Position numbers and translations under genes: made by a program. Source: Octopus sinensis (Eukaryota). Taken from it: 64,000 bases of DNA. Each line of letters begins with the position of its first letter. The stretch's first letter is position 1. Location of the stretch: positions 23,932,001 through 23,996,000 of the forward strand of contig NC_043000.1 in NCBI RefSeq assembly GCF_006345805.1, written 5' to 3'. Under the pieces are notes generated by a model, which was given only the letters and a program-made list of their open reading frames with translations, had not been told where the DNA came from and searched no databases. Below, in pieces: positions 1,699 through 50,742 of the stretch.

Positions 1699-1857
1699 TC
1701 ATTTTCCCAAACTGAACGATAATTTTGGTCGAGCATTTTTCTTATTTAAAATTCTGTCTTGTTCTTGTTTCACCCGTTTCCTTTCCTCCTCTTCCATTCT
1801 CTGTTTCTCTTCCAAAATTTTTCGCTGTTCTTCAACCAGCTTCAACTGCTCTTCAGC
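1699..1857 (-). CDS. ARGLU1: ARGLU1 terminal coding exon 5
   Basis: Acceptor ttcttcattcag|G. Encodes AEEQLKLVEEQRKILEEKQRMEEEERKRVKQEQDRILNKKNARPKLSFSLGK*, including the diagnostic RPKLSFSL C-terminus. Confidence 0.97.
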   Translation of the reverse strand, partial: AEEQLKLVEEQRKILEEKQRMEEEERKRVKQEQDRILNKKNARPKLSFSLGK

Positions 1858-2965: not shown

Positions 2966-3830
2966 TTATCCTATGGTTTGCTCTAGTTTAAAAAGTAATT
3001 ATTAAGTTGACTCCTTGACAAAATGTGTAGATATGGATTTTAAAAGTGTGTGTGCAAACAACAACAACACCACACCTCCAACTGTGGGAGAAATACTTCG
3101 ATGTCAGCCTTCACTTGTGTTTTGTAGACTCGGAAGTGAACATATGTTCTGGCCCCGAAGAGAAGGTTCAGGCTATAAGATGTGATCCCAGCAAAAACAT
3201 AAGCCTAATATAGCTAAGACCACATACTCAGAGATAGTAAGGTCTAACATGAGGCTTCTAGTTAAATACTATTCAGAGCATGAATTTTTATTGAATGACA
3301 TTTCAAACAACTTATCACGACAACTGTTTCTTGAGCCAACATTAAATTGAAATTAGCCATCTGTGCATCATACTTAATGTATATACAACAATGAAAGGCA
3401 TGATGCAGTGGACTTTGTCTGTGAAGAAATCTTTTCATAGACATCTTAAGAACACTATATAATAGCAGAGCAAGGCAAACATCATTGCAGCAAGACTCAT
3501 GAGAACATCAGATTCTTGGGAATTGAATATAAACTATGGACATACTTTATTGTCACCTGACATGTAAATCTGTCATGAAGTGATTCAACAATCGTATTAC
3601 ATTTTTAAAGTCACTAAATCATTGCTAATGGAGACTGCATTCTCAAACCTTTTTAACCAGGGCTTAATCAATAGGGTTTCCATTTTCCTAAAATCCATGA
3701 CGCTTCATCAAGGTCATATTTGCGAAACTTATACTCTAGGATATTTCATCTAGTAATATCCAATGTTAATATCATTAAGCAGTTTCTAACTTTGTATTTG
3801 GGCTAGAATTAAAGCCACACTTCTATGTTT

Positions 3831-4078
3831 ATCATCGTTTAATGTCCGCTTTCCATGCTAGCATGGGTTGGACGATTTTGACTGAGGGTTGGCGAACCAG
3901 ATGGCTGCACCAGGCTCCAATCTGATCTGGCAGAGTTTCTACAGCTGGATGCCCTTCCTAACACCAACCACTCTGAGAGTGTAGTGGGTGCTTTTTACGT
4001 GCCACCGGCACGAGGGCCAGTCAGGCGGTACTGGCAACGACCTCGCTCAAATCTTTTTACACATGCCAACGGCACAGG
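3831..4078 (-). mobile_element. (GAT)n-tailed retroposon/SINE, 5'-truncated
   Basis: Family core GTGGTTGG(C/T)GTTAGGAAGGGCATCCAGCTGTAGAAA and 3' end CCAACCCATGCTAGCATGGAAAGCGGAC(G/A)TTAAACGATGAT. At least 15 copies in the window. Confidence 0.85.
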
Positions 4079-4134
4079 AGCCTATTTTACTTAAATAAAA
4101 TCAAGACAAGCAACAATCTAAGACCCCAACTTAC

Positions 4135-4218
4135 CAATTTTCTTTGAGCTTCTTCAATTTTTTTATTGTTTTCTTCCATTATGCGTTCAAGATCCTCTCG
4201 CTTTTTCCGCTCCTCTTC
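4135..4218 (-). CDS. ARGLU1: ARGLU1 coding exon 4
   Basis: Acceptor ctgtctttgtag|G and donor TTG|GTAAGT. 84 nt encoding EEERKKREDLERIMEENNKKIEEAQRKL. Not in the ORF track. Confidence 0.95.
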
Positions 4219-7200
4219 CTACAAAGACAGATAACCATGTTCATACGAAGGTGCATAACAAACAAACTGTATAATACACGAGGAATAAAATAATCAGCTG
4301 TAAGCTATGACACAATAAGTAACAGGCCGTGGATGAGTTCAACGTAGAGCAGCAGGAGTAGCAGTAGCAGCAGCGACAGCAGTAGTACCAGCGGCAGTTA
4401 CACAACCACTATACCCCCCACCACCGCCACCACCACCACCACCACCAGTGGCCATCAGCACAGCTGGGTGAGAACAAAGGTGTTTCAAATTACTGTTGTT
4501 GTTGTCAGCACAGAAAGGCAAGGGATAATAAATATGTTTTTTGATGTTATTTTTTTTAAATTTACAAAAGGCTACACATCACATTAGACAAACATTCAAA
4601 CAACACTCTAGAAAAAAAAATAGTTTAGTCAAATACAGATGACCGAATCAGTCATCTTTTCATTTATAAATATGTTTCTTGATGAAAAAAAACAAAAACA
4701 AAGGAGCTAGATCATTGGTAACAATTGTTTGTGTTTTTAAAAGGCAAGAGGGAGAAGTAAAAAAAAAATAATTGAGAAACAAATTAAGAAAAACACAAGC
4801 GGCAATGTTACAAACCTTTTCACAAGAATCAGCATGAGATCTAACAGCAATTCAACCTCAACATTAATATAAATATTTTCTTTTTATATGTTAGAGTCAT
4901 GAGGGGAAAAAAAGGTCAAAATAAAAAGATACATACCAGTTGGACTTTAAAGAATTTAAAATTAATTATATAAAAAAATGTACATTTTATAATAAACATG
5001 AATTTAGAAAAAAATAAGTATGGAATTAGCATTTTGGTTGAACTTTTATGCATATTCCTAGAGATAAGGAATCGATTAGCCCAACATATTGCATTGTGGG
5101 CAGTAATTTCTACTACACTCCAAGAATAGTTTAAACAAATTGCACGGAGAATTGACAGATAATGTGACGTCATTGATAGAAAAGTATCTTTCTACATACC
5201 CAAGAGTAGGTAGGTACACATCTGTAGCACATGACACGATTATATCCTTCCAGGAATGCTTCCTCTTCAAACTGTTTACTTCACAGCAGCAGCCAGTTGT
5301 CTCATATTTAAACAAAGCCATTAAAATCCCCAACTAGACACCAAATAAACTGTCCACCAGTCAGTGGTAGTAGCAGCAGCAGCAGGTAATAAAGGGCAAG
5401 TAATTATAAGGAGGTGGCCAGCGAAAAATTGACGACGCTTGTATTAACTGTTTCAGCAGTCGATACATAATACAGAAGAAAAGGATTTGGCCAAAGACCC
5501 AAAACAAAATCCCTTTAGGTCTTCTAAAGTGAAAGTGTCAGAAGTGGCATTAACAAAACTTTCCTACAACTACTACAACTACCACTGATTTCTAAAAAAA
5601 AGGGAATTCCTAAGATTGTAAGACTTGGTGCTTTACTTTTATTCTCCTCTCTCAATAATTAACATTCGTTATAAAAGAAATTATACTGATAAATAGATGT
5701 CGTAATTGGCAATGGCTACAATAGAAGTTGCTTTTAGTAATACTAAATGATAATCAGGCAAGCATATGATTATTGCCTTTGTTATAAACCAATATATCAA
5801 AACACAGACATTCCCAGGTTAGTGTAAGAAGGAAGCAATCTGCACACTCTTAGATAAGGGTTCCTGTTACTAAAAAATACTAACACACTATTAAGAGAGA
5901 TTTTGGTCTAAATATCAATCTCTATACAAAACAATTCCTTCATTTTCTTTTAACATTAGTTTGATGGGAAATTAAAGAAACAATGTAAATATAAAATTAA
6001 AAGACAGGAGCAAAAAGAAACTAAAAAGAGAGAAGCAACACTCAACAAACAATATGGAACAGAAATTGGCTGACAAGCTGAAATTTGCAGAGAATTTCCT
6101 AAAACTGTTTGAAAATGGTCAAAACTACATTCATTAAATAACCATCTTGAAAATTGTTTTAGCCCCTTAACATGTAGAGTTTTGAATTGCACACCAAAAC
6201 TTATTCTGAAGTATATAGAAAAAAGAAAAAAAAAAAGAGTGAATGAAAATCTGATAAAGAAATTCCATGTATTTTAAAGTATATTCTAAGTACCAGTGCC
6301 AAGAACTTGCAATGCAATGGAATGGACAATCTGTGAAAAGATGTTATTAATAACGTCAAGAAAAATTCAAAGCTAAATAGAGTAATATTAAACCCTGAAG
6401 TACAAGAGATGAACGCACCATTTAGATCAGAATGGGCAAACAGCAATTTAAGGGAGCAAGGACAGAAGGGAATTATGGCTGTGTAAACTTTACATACTTC
6501 CTCAGCTGTGTGAATATCCAATCTTTTATATCTTTTCAGCAGGAATCCAATGGTATGGTTTATTTTACTGGAAATGCATCACTGAATACTGTAAAAAAAT
6601 GTTCTCATTAGGTCTGACGGCATTAGCAACCTAATGATTGTTCCAGTTAACTTATGCCGATATATGTGTGGCCAAAATATAGCATGTACACATGGGAGCA
6701 GAATTGCTCAATCAATAACAATACTTACAAAGAGATGTCAAGAAACAGCTTTCTGCTTAAAGAAATCTTTCACAAATTGGAAACCTGTTGGATTAAATAA
6801 CCAACTGCCAATAACATTTTCAGCTGGAAACGTACTCAATTTTTGAGTTATGTAAACGAAAATGGAAAATTTCAATTGTTAATTTTAGGATATATATTCA
6901 TCCTTTCAGAATAAAAACTGAAGTTCAAATACATTACAGTTTCCATGCTCTTTTATATTTTCCAGCATGTAACTTATTCTTCATAAAATAAAAAAAGAAA
7001 GCAACAATATAACTGTTTAGCACGTTGTATCAATATTGGTAAGGATGTACAGTTCAGCAGCCAAAAGTCCAATAAATGAGAAGATGGAAAAAAAAAAAAA
7101 AGCCAATGCAAAAGCAGATGGATACAAGACATAAAAACAGTACCATGACATTGCACCTATGACACCATTCAGAAACTATCATTTATCAGAAACTTCAAAT

Positions 7201-9606
7201 GGTTAAGCAAAGCTCTGAGTTTAGTTTGAGTTCTGCAATCCAAAGAGGAAGCAAATTTTAAGAAACCAACATATGTATTGCAACAAATCAAACAATTCCA
7301 GTTTATAAGTTTCCTATCAAATTAAAATAAAAAGAAATTCAAACTCGTTGATTTAAGCCTTAAGGAATTTCTACAATTTCTTTAAGGAAAAAGCTGTCTC
7401 TTGAACAAGATTTTCTACTTGGGAAGAAGATAGAATCTGTATCATTCCAACCATTATTAAAACAAATATTCCTCATTTCACAGAGTAGCACTCAATTATG
7501 TCAGAATAGAGCTACCAATGATAGAAGACTAATGTGAAGCAAAAGTAGTGTAATACATCAGCCATTCAAACTAAAGAGAGACTATCCTCAATTAAATTTA
7601 CAAACAAAATGAAACTTAAAAGATTAAATAAAATAAATGGTCTTCACTGATGCAGATTCTAATTTTGCTGTCAACTAAAAAAAAAAAAAAAGAGCCACTT
7701 GCATACTTACATCAACCATTCATACAAAATAGAGAGAAACAGCTTCAACACCAGAAGATGTACATAACCAGTTTCACAAGTGAAGTAACCAGAAAACTAA
7801 CAAATACAAATAATTAAGACATTAACATAAGTTGATTTAGATAACATAGACTTTGGTTTGAAAAACGTGAGAGAAAATAAGACAAGATCGTTAACTGAGC
7901 CAACTGAAAATTATAATGATGTTATCAATAAAATGCTTGAGGTTTATGAAGAACAAGACTGTTAAATGCTAACAAAAATGTTTGCAATGAAAAAAAAAAA
8001 AAAAGGACAGTAAAAGTGGGAATATTATTGCAAAGTTGAAACAATTTGAATAGGATATGAATCAGGGCTCTGGGCCATATTCACTGCTAAAATAATGTTG
8101 ATAAATTTTGACCAATTCAGCAAAAACCACAAAAAGGAAAATATGCAATCAGTTGTAATTGGTGTTGTTTTAAATTCCATTAAAAGGAGTAAGAATATAT
8201 AAAACAATTTGGAAATCAAAATTTTCTCTTGATTAATTAAAAACTTGAAACTAACTAACAAAAAATCATCCTGAATAGAAAAAGGGAACCAGGATATTAT
8301 ATAAAATATCTATTGAAATCTTTAAGACAGCCTTGAGGAAAGGAACACTGCAACCATCTTATTGGAAGGAATTGAAAAGAAAAACCAACATAGATATTAA
8401 ATATTTTAAGACAAATTTAATGTTATAGAGAGGAAGGGGATAAACTGCCAGTTAAAAGATTCCTTGCCTATTTCCCCTCACATTTTTCATTCCATTTACA
8501 ACTTTACAGAACTAGGCTAGCATTAAATTATAGAGCCAACATTTAATTTGTCAGCCAGAGCCATTTATTTTTCATAAATGACATTTTAAATTATACAGGT
8601 CAATAATTATCATTTCTATTATTGAACTTTCACAGATTGAAGAAGTGGGAGAGAAAAAAAAAAGATAAAAACCATCTATAATACAAGAATTGTGAACAAT
8701 CAAAAACTGTGTGCAAATAAGATACATGTGAAAAGAGATGAGATTTTATTTTAAAAGAAAATTTATTTCTTTTAAATTATGTACATCAAACTCTTTCCAC
8801 TATTGAAAAGAAGTTTATGATTTGTGAATTGGAAATCAAAATGCAATTTAATAATGGCAATACTATTTGTTTTGTAATGTTTACTGTTTCTTTCAAAAGT
8901 ATTCCTACATTGTGTTTTAAAGTTCTGAGAGAATCCTTTTTAGAAAAGATCAAAATACAAATTGCACGTGTGTGTGTGTGTGTGTGTGTGTGGTAAGAAC
9001 TCACACAATATCAACAAGGAAGTACTTTTATTCCTTCTTTAAATTAAACTCTTTGGACACCAAACTGCCTCTAATATAAATCTGTTCATTTTTAAGTTGT
9101 TTATATTTAAAATTGAACCCTCCATGTAGTTTTATGCAGGAGATATAAGTTATAAGAATGTTATACTTATATTTTTACTAAATCCTTCAAATTAATCCAA
9201 AAATTGACAGGCAGTGTATTTTATTAGAAATACGGTAACAAGAGAGTTAGGAACAGAAATGTTCGATAAAACAGTTCACATTCAGGATAGAGATGATTTT
9301 TTTTTTTTTCAGAATAAAGTTTTTAACTATATCAACCTAAAAATGAATTATCATAGGAAGTAGAGAGAAAGAAATATAAGAACTCTTAATTTCTTCCTTG
9401 TAATAAAAACAAAAAAAAAAAAAGACTTTTTTCCTTCCCAATTTAAAATACCTACATGAATTTAGTAAATGTGTTACCAAGTCCTAATCAATTATGGTTT
9501 TGGCATTTTTTAATATAGAATTAGATAATAAGCCTTTCTTTGGGAAAATAATTAACTAATTAACTATTAATTATGAAAATACTGCAATACAGCTGACCTA
9601 ATTTAA

Positions 9607-9659
<53 letters not shown>

Positions 9660-10005
9660 TATATATATACATACACACACACACCATTATAGTTTACTTA
9701 AGTAGATATATAATAGTAAAAAGAAAATTTTAATGGAACTAAAGCCATAACAATTTAAAGTGAAAAGCAATTTACAAGATTACCAAAACACACATAGCTT
9801 CAGGACTTTGACAAGACATTTTAAAACAAAATGTAGCCTAAAGTGATTATCAATTTTAGAATTTAAAAGACAAAAAAAAAAAAAAAAAAATCAATACAAT
9901 AGTTACTGATGTTTTTCTTTAGGGAACTGGAGAGTAAAATATGAAAAGTAAACCAAACTGAGGGGAAAACAGCAAAGAAAAATAAAAGCTGAAACTTTGC
10001 AATAC

Positions 10006-10231
10006 CTCCTTTTGACGTTGTGCTTCAAGTTCAGCTTGGCGTTGTCTTTCTAATTCTTCAAGCATTTGTTTCTCCATTATTCGTTTTGCTTCTTCTACCC
10101 GTCGCATCACCTCAGCTTCAATTTCATCTTTACGTTTCTCAAGCTCTTCATTAACTCTTTTAGCCACAAGCTCTTCTACACGCCTAGCTACTTCCTCTTC
10201 TATCAATTTTTCTTCCAGTTCCTTTTGTTTT
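10006..10231 (-). CDS. ARGLU1: ARGLU1 coding exon 3
   Basis: Acceptor accttcattag|A and a non-consensus donor GAG|GTATTG. 226 nt encoding [75 protein letters not shown], the conserved ARGLU1 coiled-coil core. Confidence 0.97.
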
Positions 10232-13200
10232 CTAATGAAGGTAAAAAAAAAAAAATTCTCCATAAGATATAATACTACAATCTGGAAGAAAATACTTAAG
10301 AAAATGAAAATAAAATTAAAATTTCATTTAAAAATTTGAATTTATTCTAATTTATTCAAATCTGCAAGTGTGATATGTAAAATCCATCACAGTATAATAT
10401 TCTTCATAAACACCTAAAGGTAGATGATAATTAAAACAAATGTAATCCTTCATATTTTTTTGTACAGTAAATGGTCCAGTAATCAAAGATGAAGTGCTGA
10501 AAAATTGTTTAAGTACAGCACTTAATTTATAAACAATAAAAATAAAACCAAAAGGACTTGATGCTGAGTAAGGACCAAAAACAAGGTAGTGCAAATACTG
10601 AATAAATAAAACTCAAAAGGAGAAATATGGAACATCTACTGTAAAAGTAAATCTGTGAAACAAAGAGTAATTTTAATTAAATTATGGCTTTATGAGAAGA
10701 AAATAGGATTATAAAAAAATGCAATAATAAGCAGCAGCAGCAGCAGATATAATGATTCAGTAACAGTCAAGTTCTATTTGGTCAAAATGGCTATATACAT
10801 ATTTCTTTGTATAATTATTGTTGGTTTGGTCTGGAGGAAAGAGATATGCCTATGGCTTCTCACAAGTTCCTGTTGAATGGTGAGGCTGATACAGTGAGAC
10901 CAAAGTTTTAGTAATTTTTTAATAATCTTCAGAAAGGACATGAAACTGGTTTGATTTAAACATTTATAATGGGGTATATTAGCCTACCAAACTTCATTTT
11001 GAGTATCAATATACATTTTTAAAAAATTATGAGGGTTGTTACATATTAACCCTACAGAACATTTCTTTTTAAGAAAAAATCTTTTTAATTATGTAATTAC
11101 TCATTTGATAGGAAACTACTTGTAATCTTTAGATGAAGGTAAGACATGAGATTATAATAGATCTCACATTTGCAATTTGAACAGAGGTATCTTACTTTTC
11201 ATCCATACTTTCCTGACCAACTAGAAATTTTGTATGCCATGTTACATAACAGACTGTCCTAGCCTTGACAGGATTGGGAGATATCTAGAACAAAGTAAGA
11301 GGGAAGTAAATAGAGTTGAAGCTGTTGTACTTGTAAACCAAATAATGGAAATTTCATTTTAAAACATCAAGTGAACAGTCCAATGTACTGTATACAGGGT
11401 TTATAGTGAAGAGAAGTTCTTACTCAGATGGTGGATCCAAAGGGTGATTTATTATTTTTTTTTAATTCAAAGAATACCAACAGCTGTCTATTGAACAAAT
11501 AATTAGGAAATACACTTACCTTCAAAGAATTATTTGGCATTAACTGCTTTTTATATTGAATACACCTGAAATTCTTTCAGCCAACGTAAACATAATTGGA
11601 TCATTTTTCATATAATACATGAAATGCTTAATGAGGACAAAAAAATGTCTTGGGAAACAGCAGCAAATAATTTTTCAAGTTACAGCATCTTGAAGAAATA
11701 AAAATTTAAGTCTATCTCTATACATGAATCAATAAAAAGGGAAACAGATTTAACTAGAAATATATCTTCTCCTTTGTGTTCCAGCTATGGTCTAATCATG
11801 GACATTTTGGATGTAGAGTTTTACAGTCAAACAGATTTTCTTGATGCTACATGTTCTAATGTGGCTAATCAGCTGTCTATTATTAGAAGCTACCTTTTAT
11901 TAAAGGTGTGGACAGCCTAACCAGTAAAGCACAAATTATTTTAAAATTCTTAATTTGTTTGTTTTTGCTTTATTTAAAAGGATTTTTAACAGCAGTTATT
12001 TTTAAAACAGGACTTGTATCTATAATGTCAATAAAGCATTATAGACTATCCTTAAATCTGTATCTACAATAAAGACTTATCAAGTAGTATTCTTATTTTC
12101 TAAGATGCCAGCTAAAAGTAGGCATGTAAATGAAATTTATTAAATTACAAATCTAGGATTTGTTCATTAGGATGTAATGAACAGTTAATAAATTTAAATA
12201 ATTAAAAAAAAAACATGTACTTCAATATATCAACTGTAAATAAAAATGTTGAGTTTGTTAATAGAACATCATTAAAAAAAAAAATCAACAAGCCAAAATC
12301 TAGAGAAATATTAGATTTAGATTGTTTATGATGGTTGTATGTAAAATGATTAAAAACTATAGTGAAGTAAATTAAAAATAAGTATATTTCTAATTTACAT
12401 AAAATCAGTGAAAACTAAAAGGAAATAAAGTAAATAAAAATGAAGGTATGCAGCCCCTTAGGTTCAATTATTGGCTATTTGCGAATCAACTTCGATACTG
12501 GTTGAAAATCAGAAAGATTAAACTCCATTTGCTCAGTCATCACAATACAGCACACATTGCAGTAAAACTATTCTTGTTCAGTAAACCCAATAGATTAATC
12601 AACTGGAATTCTATTATTTTCATTGTATTTCCTTTTAATCTATGTAAATACTAGATAATCATGATGGTAGTGTTGATAAAAATACTATTTTAAATTAACC
12701 GAATATTGTGAAATTTCAATTCACTAATTGTTTCTAATTTATGCACAAGGCCAACAAATTTGAGGGAAGGGGTTACTACTGGCTCCAGTATTTGACTGGT
12801 ACTTTATTTTATTGACTCCAGAGAGATGAGGATCAGTGGAAGGCAAAACTGACAAATATCAGATAAGCCATTTCTTTGGTAATATTTTCCACAATGTAGT
12901 TCACATGAACAAGCACCTGTTCAGGCTTCAATTTTCTTAGAGTATAGACGGATGTAATCCCATACATTTTACAGTCAAGACATTAGTTTTGCTCTGAAGG
13001 ATGGTGCGGTGATATCAGAACATGATATTCTGCAAGTTCATGCATTTTGAAAGATGTAGTACATTCCGGAAACTGCTGAATAATGTTGTACATAGGCATG
13101 AGGTCTAGTGGTTAGGTTGTAGCTCACTATCATAGGATTGTGGCCTTGATCCCCAGACCAGGTGAAACACTTCTCACATTGCTGGCACACTGTGCCCCTG

Positions 13201-13908
13201 TGCAGGAAATGTTGATTTGATGGAGTGGGTGAGCTAATGTGCAACACAAGCATTTGATCATTATAAACAAATCATCTGTGCCAGTTGTTCTGCAAGAAAT
13301 CACAGAGCTTTCATCAGTCATTTGTGACATGAGAGGAAATTGCACTGAGACTATCAAAAAGTATTCAGCAATAAATTCTTTTCAATTATTCATCAACTAA
13401 GTTTTAAAAATGCATAAACAAACGGTTAGCATAAGTGTTTAATGAAAATAACTGACAACACAAACAATTGTACAACTGTTTGATTTCAAGGAGTTCAAAG
13501 TTCCATTTTTTGGAGTATTTAGGAACTAGAGATTTATATACTCCACTAAGATCATGTATTCTTAACAGAAGGTTTAAATCAGATAACCAGCTAACCACAA
13601 TGTTAAAAAAAAAACATCACCATAAAACAGCTTGCTGATGAGATGAGCTTAGTACAGGTTGAAACACTAAACTGAAACCGTTTTCTCTAAGATCTACTTT
13701 CAACAAATGAAGTCAAAGTATCTGAAGGGAATTGTGTTCCTATGACAAGTCCTCATACAACTACAACCACTTATACAAATTAAACTTGCTGGAAAATAAA
13801 ATTCCCACATATATTTTTTTACTCTTTTGCTTGACATTATTATTGTTGTTTGAAGGAGTATAGGAAAATTTATAAAGAGCCATCTACGTGCATCTATAAA
13901 GTGTATGG

Positions 13909-14541
13909 ATCATCATCATCATCATTTAGCGTCCGTTTTCCATGCTAGCATGGGTTGGACGGTTCAACTGGGGTCTGGGGAGCCCGAAGGCTGCACCAGG
14001 CCAGTCAGATCTGGCAGTGTTTCTACAGCTGGATGCCCTTCCTAACGCCAACCACTCCGAGAGTGTAGTGGGTGATTTTATGTGCCACCGACACAGGTGC
14101 CAGACGAGGCTGGCGAACGGCCACGCTCGGATGGTGTTTTTATGTGCCACCGACACAGGTGCCAGACGAGGCTGGCAGACGGCCACGCTCGGATGGTGTT
14201 TTTATGTGCCACCGACACAGGTGCCAGATGAGGCTGGCGGACGGCCACGATCGGATGGTGTTTGTTACGTCCCCAAAGCACGGAGGCCAGTCTATGCGGT
14301 ACTGGCTACGGCCACGTTCGGATGATTTTCTTGTGTGCCACCGGCACTGGTACCACAAAGATACAAATTCCATTTATGTTCATCTATTTTGATTTGTTTT
14401 GATTTGATTTGATTTTCACTTGCCTCAACAGGTCTTCACAAGTGTCACAAGAAGGAAGGTATGCACAGGTGGACTGACTACGTCCCAGGTAGGGGCCACG
14501 GGTTATGGCCTGACTAGTCTTGCCGGGTCTTCGGATGGTGT
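13909..14541 (-). mobile_element. (GAT)n-tailed retroposon with an internal ~62-bp tandem array
   Basis: Same family. Three near-identical CpG-rich ~62-bp units at ~14076-14262 plus two diverged units. Confidence 0.85.
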
Positions 14542-17282: not shown

Positions 17283-17393
17283 AAAATTCTCTGTTTTTCC
17301 AATTCAGCTTTCTTTTCCTCCTCTTCCCGACGTTTAGCACGAATAATAAGATCTTCATCACTACTTGAACTACTAGAAGAATATGATCGCCGC
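17283..17393 (-). CDS. ARGLU1: ARGLU1 coding exon 2
   Basis: Acceptor tttatatttacag|G and donor TT|GTAAGT. 111 nt encoding RRSYSSSSSSSDEDLIIRAKRREEEEKKAELEKQRI(L). In frame with exons 1 and 3; EEEEKKAE matches the ARGLU1 family. Confidence 0.92.
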
Positions 17394-20300: not shown

Positions 20301-21026
20301 TGTGCGTTGTCCTAGTTCCCCAACCATTGCTCGACAACAGCAATGGCTTGTTTACACTCCTATAACTTAGCAGTTCGGCAAAAGATACGAGTACAATAAG
20401 TACCAAACTTGCAAAATTCATTAAAGAAGCAATATTAAGATAAAGGGTCAGAAAGAATTATAGCACATCAGTATTTATGGATAGTAGAATTCACAATCAA
20501 GTAAATGGAGTTTACGATGTCAAGATGTGAAACATTTATAACTTAAAGAGGTAAACAACTGTGAGAGACTGAAATATTTCTTGGTTATTATAAAACTTTG
20601 TCTTGGGAAGGCTAAAAATAGAAATTGGTGCAAATTTATATTTGAGACTTAAAATTTTGTTATATTTCTGTTGAAATATACTGCCTTTCTTTTAATTAAT
20701 TTTTAACATAATGGAGAATTTACTCAAATTACTTTGTCATTATTAAGCTGTTGTTTTGAGAATAATTTTACATGAAAGTTTGATGGAAGGTCTTATTTTA
20801 GATCTCTGCAAAAAAAAAAAGTTTATACCATAAAGCCAAGGGTTGTTTTGGGCAGGTTGATATCAAAAGGATTAATCCTGTAGGATAAAAAAGCAGTTTA
20901 CTAGCCTGGGAAGTGAAGTCAAATATAATGCTGTTGAGCTTTGTGACTAAACTGTATACAGTGCCGTACACGGTTGAAAATTTAATGATTTAATATGAGC
21001 AAGACCTGGTAGTGATTTTTCAATCT

Positions 21027-31447: not shown

Positions 31448-31632
31448 CTGGCAACTCGTTTTCTATCTTTAGACCGAGAGCGTTGTACTCTGCTGCTACT
31501 GTGATGCCGACTTATGCTATGGATGCGATCTCTGGACGCAGACCGCGAACGTGACCTAGTGCGCCTTTTCTTGTGTTTTGCACGGTGTCTCGTCCTGCTT
31601 GTTGATCGACTACGACTTCTTGATCGTCCCAT
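31448..31632 (-). CDS. ARGLU1: ARGLU1 (arginine/glutamate-rich protein 1) coding exon 1
   Basis: ATG at 31632 encodes an RS-rich N-terminus, MGRSRSRSRSTSRTRHRAKHKKRR...KRVA(R). Donor CAG|GTTCGT at 31448/31447. 185 nt, phase 2; joins exon 2 in frame. Confidence 0.92.
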
Positions 31633-40884: not shown

Positions 40885-41419
40885 ACATAAATATTTATTT
40901 CATATATTTTGCAATACACAATACATCTAATACTATTAGTTCTGTTTAACCAATAAATTAGATACATTTTTTTCTGTTTTTTTTTGTTAAATATTCATGA
41001 ACATTCGTTAAGAATACAACACACCAGGAACTGGATTTTAAAACTGTAGTGAATGACATTTGCAAATTAGTTTCCATAGTATTTTGTCTTGTATTTCCCT
41101 AAATTTATTCAGGGTTTAAAACAAAAAAAAAAAGAGAAAATCTGTATGATAAAGACTAAATCATTTTACTGTTATCACCATCATTTCACATCCATGTTCC
41201 ATGCAGGCATGGGTCAGATAGTTTGACAGGAACTGATGTGTTCAAGGACAGGCATTTACATAGAATAGGGAGTGAATTGGTAGAAGCAGGCAGTAAGGAT
41301 GTTTGGGTGAGGGTATTTGCTCCATTAAATCTGGGTCCTGAGTTCAAATCCTGCAAAGGTCAACTTCGCCTTTCATCCTTCCTTGGTAGAGAAATAAAAC
41401 AGTCCAGTACTGCAGTTGA

Positions 41420-41570
41420 TTCTCCTCCTCCTCCTTCTTCTTTTTCTTCCTCTTCTTCTTCTCCTCCACCTCCTTCTTTTTCTTCTCCTCCTCCTTCTTT
41501 TTCTTCTTCTTCTCTTTCTTTTTCTTCTTCTTCTTCTCCTTTTTCTTCTTCTTCCTCTCCTCCTCCTCTC
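41420..41570. repeat. Polypyrimidine (TCC/TTC)n low-complexity tract
   Basis: ~150 nt almost entirely C/T on the plus strand. Confidence 0.95.
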
Positions 41571-42199
41571 TTGCCCAAGTCCTACTGCATGCAACTTAAG
41601 CAAGTGTTATATTCTACAGTGTGAGGGCATGTGGTAAGGACCTTCGGCTCATAACCATAAGGTTGTGAGTTCAACACCTGGAGGCATGCTGTGTCTTTGA
41701 GCAAGACATTTTATTCCACATTACTGCAGTCCATCCAGCTGACAAAAACGAGCTGTACTTGTAATTCAAAGAACCTGCCTTGTCACATTCTATGTCATGC
41801 TGAATCTCCCTAACAACTACATTAAGGGTACACGTGTCTGTGGAATACTCAGCCACTTGCATGTTAATTTCACGAGGAGGCTGTTCCATTGATTGGATCA
41901 ACTGGAATACTCATCACCATAACCAAGCCCTAGATCAACCAATGCCTTGTGAATGAACCTGGCCAATTTCAGAAACATAATTTTATTCTGGAAAAATTAA
42001 CAATAGAAATGTTTAGATTAGTCAAAGTATGAGCTGTGAACATCTATGCATTACAGCCATCGATCAATGAGATTATTTATGCCTCATTGATAAAAGCTTA
42101 ATGGATTTGAAACTAAGAAATCTTTGAAAGCTGATTCCACTTCTGGTTTGGACCTGAAAGTTTTATCACTTAAAAACGTGTTTAAATGCTTAAAAATGG

Positions 42200-49881: not shown

Positions 49882-50742
49882 CAAGGTTTGATCACTAAGT
49901 ATCTGGACTGTTGCCATAGTAATGAAGCTAAAGCATACAGAGTGAAACCGCTTGGCACAGATTAACCTTGAATCCTGCTGTGCATGCACACAAAGTTTTA
50001 ATGTTCCAGCTCACTTCTGCTGTTTACAGCTGTGCTTGGAAGGAAGGTGTGTAGCATGTGATTGTCGCATTGACCATGACAGAGAAAGTTGTCATGGTGA
50101 TACCTGCACAGAGGCCTACACAAAGTTACAGAAAGTGTATGGAGAGGAGTGTATAAGCCACACACAAGTGTACGAGTGGTTCAGACGCTTCCAAGATGGC
50201 CAAAAATATGTCGATATTGATGAACGTTCTAGGAGCCCAGCAACCAGCAGAACTGAGAAAAACATCGCAGACAAGTGTGCAGCTGTGAGGGGAAATTGCC
50301 GAATCACCACCTGTGAGTTATCAGAGGATGTGCAGACTAGTTATGGTTCAGTTCAGTCCATTATCACTGAAGGTTTGGTTATGAAATGAGCATCTGCCAA
50401 GTTTGTGCCAAAAATGCTTTCAGCTGACCAAAATGGCACTCGCGTTTCAGTTGCAAAAGATCTTGATTGTGTCGAGAATGATGAAAACCTTGTATAAGCT
50501 TCTGAGCATGTATCACCAAGCTTTTGGCAAAATTTGATGCCATGTCATGGTCAATGCAATGATCACACGCTACACACCTTCCTTCCAAGCACTGCTGTAA
50601 ACAGCAGAAGTAAGCTAGAATGTTAAAACTTAGTGTGCATGCACAGCAGAGTTCAAGATCAATCTGTGCCAAGTGGCTTCATTCTGTATGCTTTAGCTTC
50701 ATTACTAAGGCAACAGTCTAGATATTCATTGATCAAACCATG
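49882..50742 (+). mobile_element. Mariner derivative with ~250-bp inverted arms (the 5' end is present at both termini)
   Basis: 49882-~50130 is the reverse complement of ~50490-50742. The middle encodes the HTH region EAYTKLQKVYGEECISHTQVYEWFRRFQDG...AKFVPKML. TA at the right end. Confidence 0.85.

Follow-up and report, generated by a model that had tools for sequence, protein, structure and literature searches.

An ARGLU1 intron of Octopus sinensis that is free of detectable repeats, begins with a weak 5' splice site and lies at the position of the vertebrate autoregulatory intron

The third intron of the ARGLU1 gene in Octopus sinensis lies at exactly the position of the intron that takes part in the autoregulation of ARGLU1 in vertebrates. 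It was found in a 64-kb stretch of contig NC_043000.1, which was analysed as a whole and is called the window below, and it occupies positions 4219..10005 on the minus strand (5,787 nt). The intron begins with a weak 5' splice site, differs in composition from its surroundings and contains no detectable repeats within an otherwise repeat-rich window, and the homologous intron is retained in RNA from other invertebrates. The explanation that we tentatively favour is that this intron may take part in controlling the dosage of ARGLU1.

ARGLU1 is an RS-domain protein associated with the spliceosome (Pirnie et al. 2017, PMC5389617). Intron 2 of the human gene gives rise to a nuclear-detained retained-intron isoform, and it contains an alternative exon that is sensitive to nonsense-mediated decay (NMD) and lies inside a 500-nt ultraconserved element (UCE) (PMC5389617). 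The UCE controls both intron retention and the use of the NMD exon, and the ARGLU1 protein feeds back on the splicing of its own transcript (PMC5389617). A preliminary description of the window had named this loop of UCE, intron retention and NMD exon for human intron 2, and the published work confirms it.

Results

In tblastn searches, human ARGLU1 matched exon 3 of the window gene at 85% identity, and the alignment stops exactly at ...AQKARE in human and ...AQRQKE in the window, the next exon opening with EEERAKRE and EEERKKRE, respectively. The human query is 100% identical to the locus of the star-nosed mole (L012) in the two aligned exons. PF15346 is present in every listed ARGLU1 homologue, and the window gene is an orthologue of ARGLU1, the host gene of the homeostatic retained-intron/UCE system. 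Intron 3 is of phase 0, ends in the acceptor ttgtag|GAA and separates coding exon 3 (10006..10231, minus strand; 226 nt, with the end ...AQRQKE) from coding exon 4 (4135..4218, minus strand; 84 nt, encoding EEERKKRE...QRKL), which is followed by the consensus donor TTG|gtaagt. In the star-nosed mole, the exon ending in ...AQKARE likewise measures 226 nt and the following exon 84 nt, with an intron of 2,262 nt between them. Furthermore, the 226/84-nt exon pair and the phase-0 boundary were also found in three invertebrate loci (L011, L013 and L016), in which the homologous introns measure 2,307 nt, 3,217 nt and 2,041 nt, respectively. Because this exon pair and boundary recur in the mole and in these three loci, the ARGLU1 intron at ...KE|EEER... 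is, judging by gene structure, ancient and fixed in position. By position, intron 3 is homologous to the autoregulatory intron of vertebrates: the codon boundary and the phase are identical, and the flanking exons measure 226 and 84 nt. The preliminary description had proposed this correspondence, and its account of the phase, the flanking exons and the ...AQRQKE|EEERKKRE boundary was borne out by the gene model and tblastn, as was its reading of the donor GAG|GTATTG as non-consensus.

The 5' splice site of intron 3 (9997..10008, minus strand) reads GAG|GTATTGCAA and is weak, with the positions +4, +5 and +6 all lacking the consensus base. The next intron of the window gene starts with GTAAGT, and the same two donors, GTATTG followed by GTAAGT, were found in L011. 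The homologous intron starts with GTAATG in L014, GTACTA in L010 and GTAAAG in L015. Where the donor of the next intron could be set beside it, the two read GTAAAC and GTAAGA in L013, GTAAAG and GTAAGC in L016, and GTAACG and GTACGT in the mole. The G at +5 is therefore missing at the donor of this intron in 8 of 8 animals and present at the donor of the next intron in 5 of 5 (Fisher's exact p ~8e-4, calculated by hand). This contrast, together with GAG|GTATTG itself, constitutes the weak splice site that characterizes a retained-intron system. In addition, among 114 clusters of read-through open reading frames (ORFs), which are not phylogenetically independent, the codon after the obligatory valine is compatible with a G at +5 in just 21. 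An intron start resembling GTAWTGNAAAGTTTC is common to the window, L011 and L014. On read-through from exon 3, an in-frame stop is met 28 codons into intron 3, and the acceptor of the intron is mediocre.

The read-through ORFs also carry recognizable peptides at the start of the intron. Many invertebrate ORFs begin with V-K-x-D-T-N (VKNDTN, VKCDTN, VKRDTN or VKWDTN) and then diverge, as seen in P0021, P0025, P0026, P0045, P0060, P0096, P0122, P0135, P0141 and P0007; this pattern therefore points to a conserved sequence of ~18 nt directly after the donor in that invertebrate group. Vertebrate read-through ORFs keep VTLGRLE, from fish to mammals.

Repeats in the window were identified by self-BLAST, so that the repeat library consists of the sequences recurring within its 64 kb. 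Under default settings, repeats cover 28.5% of the window and leave one gap of 9.8 kb (4083-13902). Sensitive settings yielded 51 repeat intervals, which cover 34.6% of the window, with a longest gap of 8,620 nt (4083-12702) and a second-longest repeat-free gap of 2,243 nt; they also brought to light older copies at 1944-2152 and 12703-12829. When the repeats were placed at random 200,000 times, the median longest gap was 3.5 kb, and the probability of a longest gap of at least 8,620 nt was 3.6e-4. Considering intron 3 itself, the probability of zero repeats in 5,787 nt is ~0.004 at the density found elsewhere in the window (0.94 per kb). Detectable repeats are absent from intron 3, and their absence is improbable within the window. 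With low-complexity masking turned off, the matches within the block were limited to (GT)n, (TA)n and poly-A, and the gap is robust to the choice of masking.

The repeat-free block (4083..12702) spans intron 3 together with its two flanking exons (3 and 4), and it reaches 2,471 nt into intron 2 and 52 nt into intron 4. At its lower end it is bounded by one copy (3804..4082) of the commonest short interspersed element (SINE) of the window, which has up to 15 other in-window matches, and at its upper end, inside intron 2, by an old repeat (12703..12829), of which the window contains at least 7 other, diverged copies. The preliminary description had reported no repeat from ~4090 to ~12700 and had proposed a permutation test for the 8.6-kb gap; a matching region was recovered by sensitive self-BLAST against the in-window library, and the test gave P ~4e-4 under random placement. 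Its statement that introns 1, 2 and 4 are full of repeats, however, was too strong: there are two elements in intron 4, and the 4 in intron 2 are all separated from exon 3 by more than 2.4 kb. None of the 10 ORFs of at least 60 aa in intron 3 contains a Pfam domain, and searches of the intron for Rfam families and tRNAs yielded none. In the homologous introns, in-locus repeats account for 2% in L011 (15% for the whole locus) and 0% in L013 (12% for the whole locus), which is a low-power test.

The repeat content of intron 4 consists of one SINE and the fragments 1944-2152 and 2885-2949, the latter being a marginal match. These older fragments lie in opposite orientation and belong to a repeat also found at 20661-20873 (67-70% identity).

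Intron 3 is also compositionally distinct. Its GC content is 30%, and its sense strand consists of 41% U and 29% A, which corresponds to a U-over-A skew of 0.175, compared to values between -0.01 and 0.09 in unique stretches of the other introns and ~0 in intergenic DNA. The skew shifts at the borders of intron 3, and within the intron, the GC content is 24% at the 5' end and increases towards the 3' end, where it reaches 34-36%. Runs of at least 10 A on the plus strand, which are U-runs in the pre-mRNA, are frequent as well, with 8 of the 20 in the window located in intron 3; within 4759-13614, there are 12 of the 20. These runs may originate from replication slippage, represent eroded retroposon tails or serve as functional U-tracts. 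The U-rich skew is in keeping with a sequence that has long been transcribed and has received no new DNA through insertions, or with one in which U-rich sites for protein binding are selected for.

Within intron 3, we identified an inverted repeat of 29 nt (26/29 complementary), with its 5' arm in the RNA at 7376..7404 and its 3' arm at 6738..6766 (minus strand), the predicted stem of which would loop out 609 nt of pre-mRNA. The repeat outscores all 100 shuffles, and the predicted fold of 7440-6700 contains the ~29-bp stem in both the minimum free energy and the centroid structure (z = -3.8). It has no other copy in the window and no flanking target-site duplication. The two arms may either form a long-range structure in the RNA or mark the termini of a single-copy element, such as a foldback element or a miniature inverted-repeat transposable element (MITE). 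A consensus-like 5' splice site, TTT|GTAAGTAT (6721..6731, minus strand), lies 10 nt downstream of the stem and shares its 9-mer TTTGTAAGT with the real donor of exon 2; in total, GTAAGTAT sites were found in intron 3 at 7710 and 6728. We infer that the TTT|GTAAGTAT site is a candidate decoy or poison-exon donor. A home-made splice-site matrix failed to separate real sites (-1.4 to 9.1) from decoys and was not used for calling poison exons. The count of AATAAA in intron 3 is roughly at chance, according to a hand estimate from base composition. Further towards the 3' end, G/U-rich microsatellites (4340..4450, minus strand) precede the intron 3 acceptor by 120-230 nt; read as RNA, they are (CUG)n-like and (UGG)n.

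RNA-type contigs in which the upstream introns are spliced and this intron is kept were found for both vertebrates and invertebrates. These include 8 vertebrate retention clusters (P0011, P0013, P0014, P0015, P0018, P0024, P0111 and P0113) and 6 invertebrate ones (P0007/L015, P0037, P0048, P0050, P0072 and P0074). The contig of P0007 (L015) holds the 5' untranslated region (UTR), exons 1-3 and 938 nt of the intron. The other end of the intron is represented as well: its 3' end is joined to spliced exons 4-5 in P0091/L009, as confirmed on the contig, and in P0093, P0094 and others, as read from the protein sequences. No contig with the opposite pattern was seen among those inspected, and assembly and database biases bar a quantitative reading of these numbers.

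Two invertebrate ARGLU1 sequences show further peculiarities around this part of the gene. Just downstream of its 84-nt exon, L011 contains ~5 tandem repeats with a period of ~85 nt (L011:12521-12931), each unit of which combines ~37 nt from the end of that exon with its GTAAGT donor and ~45 nt of intron, so that several 5' splice sites that could compete with one another are lined up. No such copies of exon ends were found in the ARGLU1 introns of the window. In P0073, a JGI transcript of an arthropod-like ARGLU1, ...EAQRRE is followed by ~200 in-frame unrelated residues (DVYGIRSTPP...) and not by EEER, which points to the use of another coding exon, or of another 3' end, at the same junction in that species.

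Discussion

The intron described here and vertebrate ARGLU1 intron 2 are alike in gene, codon boundary, phase and the 226/84-nt flanking exons. Moreover, both donors lack the G at +5 (GTAACG in the mole, GTATTG in the window), and in both cases, read-through leads to an early in-frame stop. They differ in length (5.8 kb in the window, 2.3 kb in the vertebrate), and in sequence, the window intron resembles neither the vertebrate intron nor its UCE; no alternative exon was identified in the window.

Our preferred explanation, which we regard as possible but somewhat short of probable, is that intron 3 is slowly or conditionally spliced and intolerant of insertions, and that it has a vertebrate-like role in dosage control that relies on lineage-specific control elements. 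Slow or conditional splicing would leave intron 3 in a fraction of the transcripts, which would then be held in the nucleus or subjected to NMD. Abundant ARGLU1 protein would lead to more unproductive transcripts and, as a result, to a lower output of ARGLU1. Because an intron balanced in this way would poorly tolerate new splice sites, poly(A) signals or structures, SINEs and other insertions spreading through the rest of the locus would be removed from it by selection. The outcome would be an old, U-rich, repeat-free intron of 5.8 kb. The vertebrate UCE would be no part of this system, whose control elements, if any, would be specific to the lineage; the conserved bases next to the donor and the predicted 29-bp long-range stem beside the consensus 5' splice site would be candidates.

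A more far-reaching proposal, which we consider rather doubtful, is that this ARGLU1 intron, through its retention, already served as a dosage brake before protostomes and deuterostomes split, with its internal elements being replaced by lineage. The preliminary description had proposed that the intron is under purifying selection in a mollusc and that the autoregulation may be bilaterian-ancient or convergent. The constants of such an ancient brake would be the position of the intron, the 226/84-nt exon frame and a donor that is kept weak. The variable part would be represented in vertebrates by the UCE with its poison exon, and in the window genome by an insertion-intolerant, U-rich intron of 5.8 kb with a long-range stem beside a decoy 5' splice site.

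Several of our results weigh against a regulatory role of intron 3. A comparison of intron 3 with the mole region 71419-80132, which includes the UCE, gave a best E-value of 0.74 in BLAST searches with a word size of 7, and a plus-strand all-against-all comparison at E 0.01 revealed nothing between intron 3 and the homologous introns of the mole, L011, L013 and L016. The preliminary description had suggested aligning intron 3 to the UCE. With ultraconservation taken as at least 95% identity over at least 200 nt between human and chicken, or as similarity to the UCE, this alignment provided no support, as intron 3 showed no similarity to the UCE-bearing intron of the mole. Sensitive BLAST of intron 3 against the introns of L009, L010, L014 and L015 likewise gave no match, and the window lacks a 24-nt block that L009 and L013 have in common. 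The introns of the mole, L011, L013 and L016 share nothing with one another either. On this basis there appears to be no deep sequence element common to these introns, as expected at such distances. Within intron 3, no poison exon was identified beyond sequence candidates, and the 3 GTRAGT sites that it contains are roughly what chance would provide (~2-3 by a hand estimate from base composition). With regard to the repeats, the block is not specific to intron 3, since it extends 2.5 kb beyond exon 3 into intron 2, an extension that, taken alone, has a probability of ~0.1. Only 52 nt separate the SINE at 3804-4082 from the donor of exon 4, and nearby intronic DNA thus tolerates insertions. Single-copy or ancient elements, in turn, would escape detection by in-window recurrence. 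Finally, read-through contigs in assemblies can derive from ordinary pre-mRNA.

Some of these observations would be accounted for by regional heterogeneity or chance, that is, an AT-rich, insertion-poor 3' half of the gene that is unrelated to splicing and owes its state to local chromatin, insertion-site preference or stochastic history, its overlap with intron 3 being a post-hoc coincidence. The density of transposable elements (TEs) is known to differ between regions on a scale of 10 kb, and the first 12.7 kb of the window contain just 2 repeat intervals (E < 1e-4) in addition to the marginal match at 2885-2949; the continuation of the gap into intron 2, the lack of a conserved element in the comparisons of intron 3 and the selection of this finding after the fact from many windows point in the same direction. 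However, introns 1 and distal 2, which belong to the same transcription unit, carry 15-40% repeats, nowhere else does the window accommodate a repeat-free segment of 5.8 kb, and the U/A skew changes at the borders of intron 3. AT-rich DNA, moreover, is usually a good target for retroelements, and we consider this explanation somewhat unlikely. It is rather improbable, in our view, that intron 3 is not truly transposon-free, consisting largely of ancient or single-copy elements and being free only of recent SINE bursts. This would provide a source for the extra DNA of an intron that is ~2x the length of its homologues (2.0-3.2 kb), a source that is otherwise not visible; antisense retroposons could have left the 8 of 20 A-runs as their eroded poly(A) tails, the inverted repeat of 29 nt, which is unique and 667 nt across, could be a MITE, and there are marginal matches at 4952-5049 and 8581-8637 (E ~1e-3). 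Yet the inverted repeat lacks both a target-site duplication and a second copy in the window, and tblastx and Pfam searches revealed no remnant of a TE protein in intron 3, although an ORF with a Mos1-type helix-turn-helix (HTH) domain was detected elsewhere in the window. Even if hidden elements made up the intron, the lack of all recent insertions would still need a cause.

Insertions could also be excluded from the block at the DNA level, by enhancers or by an embedded non-coding RNA. Vertebrate transposon-free regions cluster at regulatory loci, as reported by Simons et al. (PMC2241635), and a block that crosses exon 3 into intron 2 suits a DNA element better than an RNA element confined to a single intron. 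The absence of an Rfam family, a tRNA or a long ORF on either strand argues against this possibility, as do the strand-asymmetric composition, which tracks intron 3 and not the whole block, and the fact that nothing is conserved with other loci; it seems quite improbable to us. A dosage-control role of intron 3 remains the explanation that we prefer, with retention in the octopus, NMD or nuclear detention, feedback by the protein and selection against insertions as its presumed components.

The proposed logic, in which excess protein leads to an unproductive isoform and hence to less protein, is the same as in the unproductive splicing of SR and hnRNP genes through poison exons and retained introns. 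While those loops are documented by RNA data in many taxa, the case of the window is built on gene structure, a weak splice site and absent insertions. Autoregulatory loops of splicing factors are old and evolutionarily flexible. A second parallel is offered by the transposon-free regions of vertebrates (Simons et al.; PMC2241635), stretches of over 5 kb that lack transposon-derived sequence in genomes rich in repeats. The block, which is free of all in-window repeats over 8,620 nt, may be of this kind, and it is likewise located at the locus of a regulator of gene expression. The vertebrate regions, however, were defined genome-wide with curated libraries and persist across lineages (PMC2241635), whereas the window represents one locus and an in-window library.

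Our literature searches found no paper linking ARGLU1 with octopus and none on splicing autoregulation of an invertebrate ARGLU1, including the fly gene CG31712. If our explanation is true, the known autoregulatory unproductive splicing of ARGLU1 would be extended outside the vertebrates, to a gene without the UCE, and the ARGLU1 loop would join the few autoregulatory circuits of splicing factors that can be traced across Bilateria. It would also mean that the circuit can persist without the UCE, which would therefore be a vertebrate elaboration and not the core of the mechanism. In addition, missing transposons in a repeat-rich genome would be a cheap means of spotting introns under regulation where a species offers few comparative resources. 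If regional TE heterogeneity is all that underlies the gap, the finding would be an ordinary one.

Additional features of the locus

The ARGLU1 homologue of the window comprises 254 aa encoded by 5 coding exons on the minus strand, with an RS-rich half and a Glu-rich half, and all of its splice junctions are canonical GT-AG. Besides the exons flanking intron 3, these are coding exon 1 (31448..31632, with the ATG at 31632), which encodes the RS-rich N-terminus and has the donor CAG|gttcgt; coding exon 2 (17283..17393; 111 nt); and coding exon 5 (1699..1857), which carries the stop codon. Exact look-ups of the window ORFs of exon 3 and exon 5 found no match on record.

The nearest relative found in protein searches is P0119, which corresponds to the contigs L001-L008 and probably stems from a second species of cephalopod. 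The hits of these searches all comprised at least 88 aa, compared to 43 aa for the exon 4 ORF of the window, and the collection searched contains no congener with coverage of exon 3. These contigs cover exon 5 of ARGLU1 together with intron 4 and the 3' UTR. The 52-residue protein sequence of exon 5 is identical to that of the window and the exon 5 DNA is 84% identical, but intron 4 (over 2.9 kb in L001-L008) and the 3' UTR could not be aligned, and weak TE matches were found in common. Because intron 4 and the 3' UTR are otherwise unalignable, any intronic block common to the two species would be meaningful. Four other sequences, P0092/L010, P0097/L014, L016 and L017, the last two from a JGI metagenome scan, were considered as close to cephalopods and rejected, as their nucleotide identity in exon 3 is 70-73%.

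Elsewhere in the window, a 62-nt unit is present in 3.1 tandem copies (95% matches) at 14071-14263, where intron 2 is rich in SINEs. As several ORFs of the window contain translations of this unit, it seems to be an internal repeat of the SINE family. Outside ARGLU1, a purine-rich low-complexity tract (~41410-41590) translates on the minus strand into long runs of E, K and R. The ORF with the Mos1-type (mariner) transposase HTH domain mentioned above is located at 49952-50389 on the plus strand (PF17906, E 2.6e-9) and represents a DNA-transposon remnant in intergenic DNA upstream of ARGLU1.

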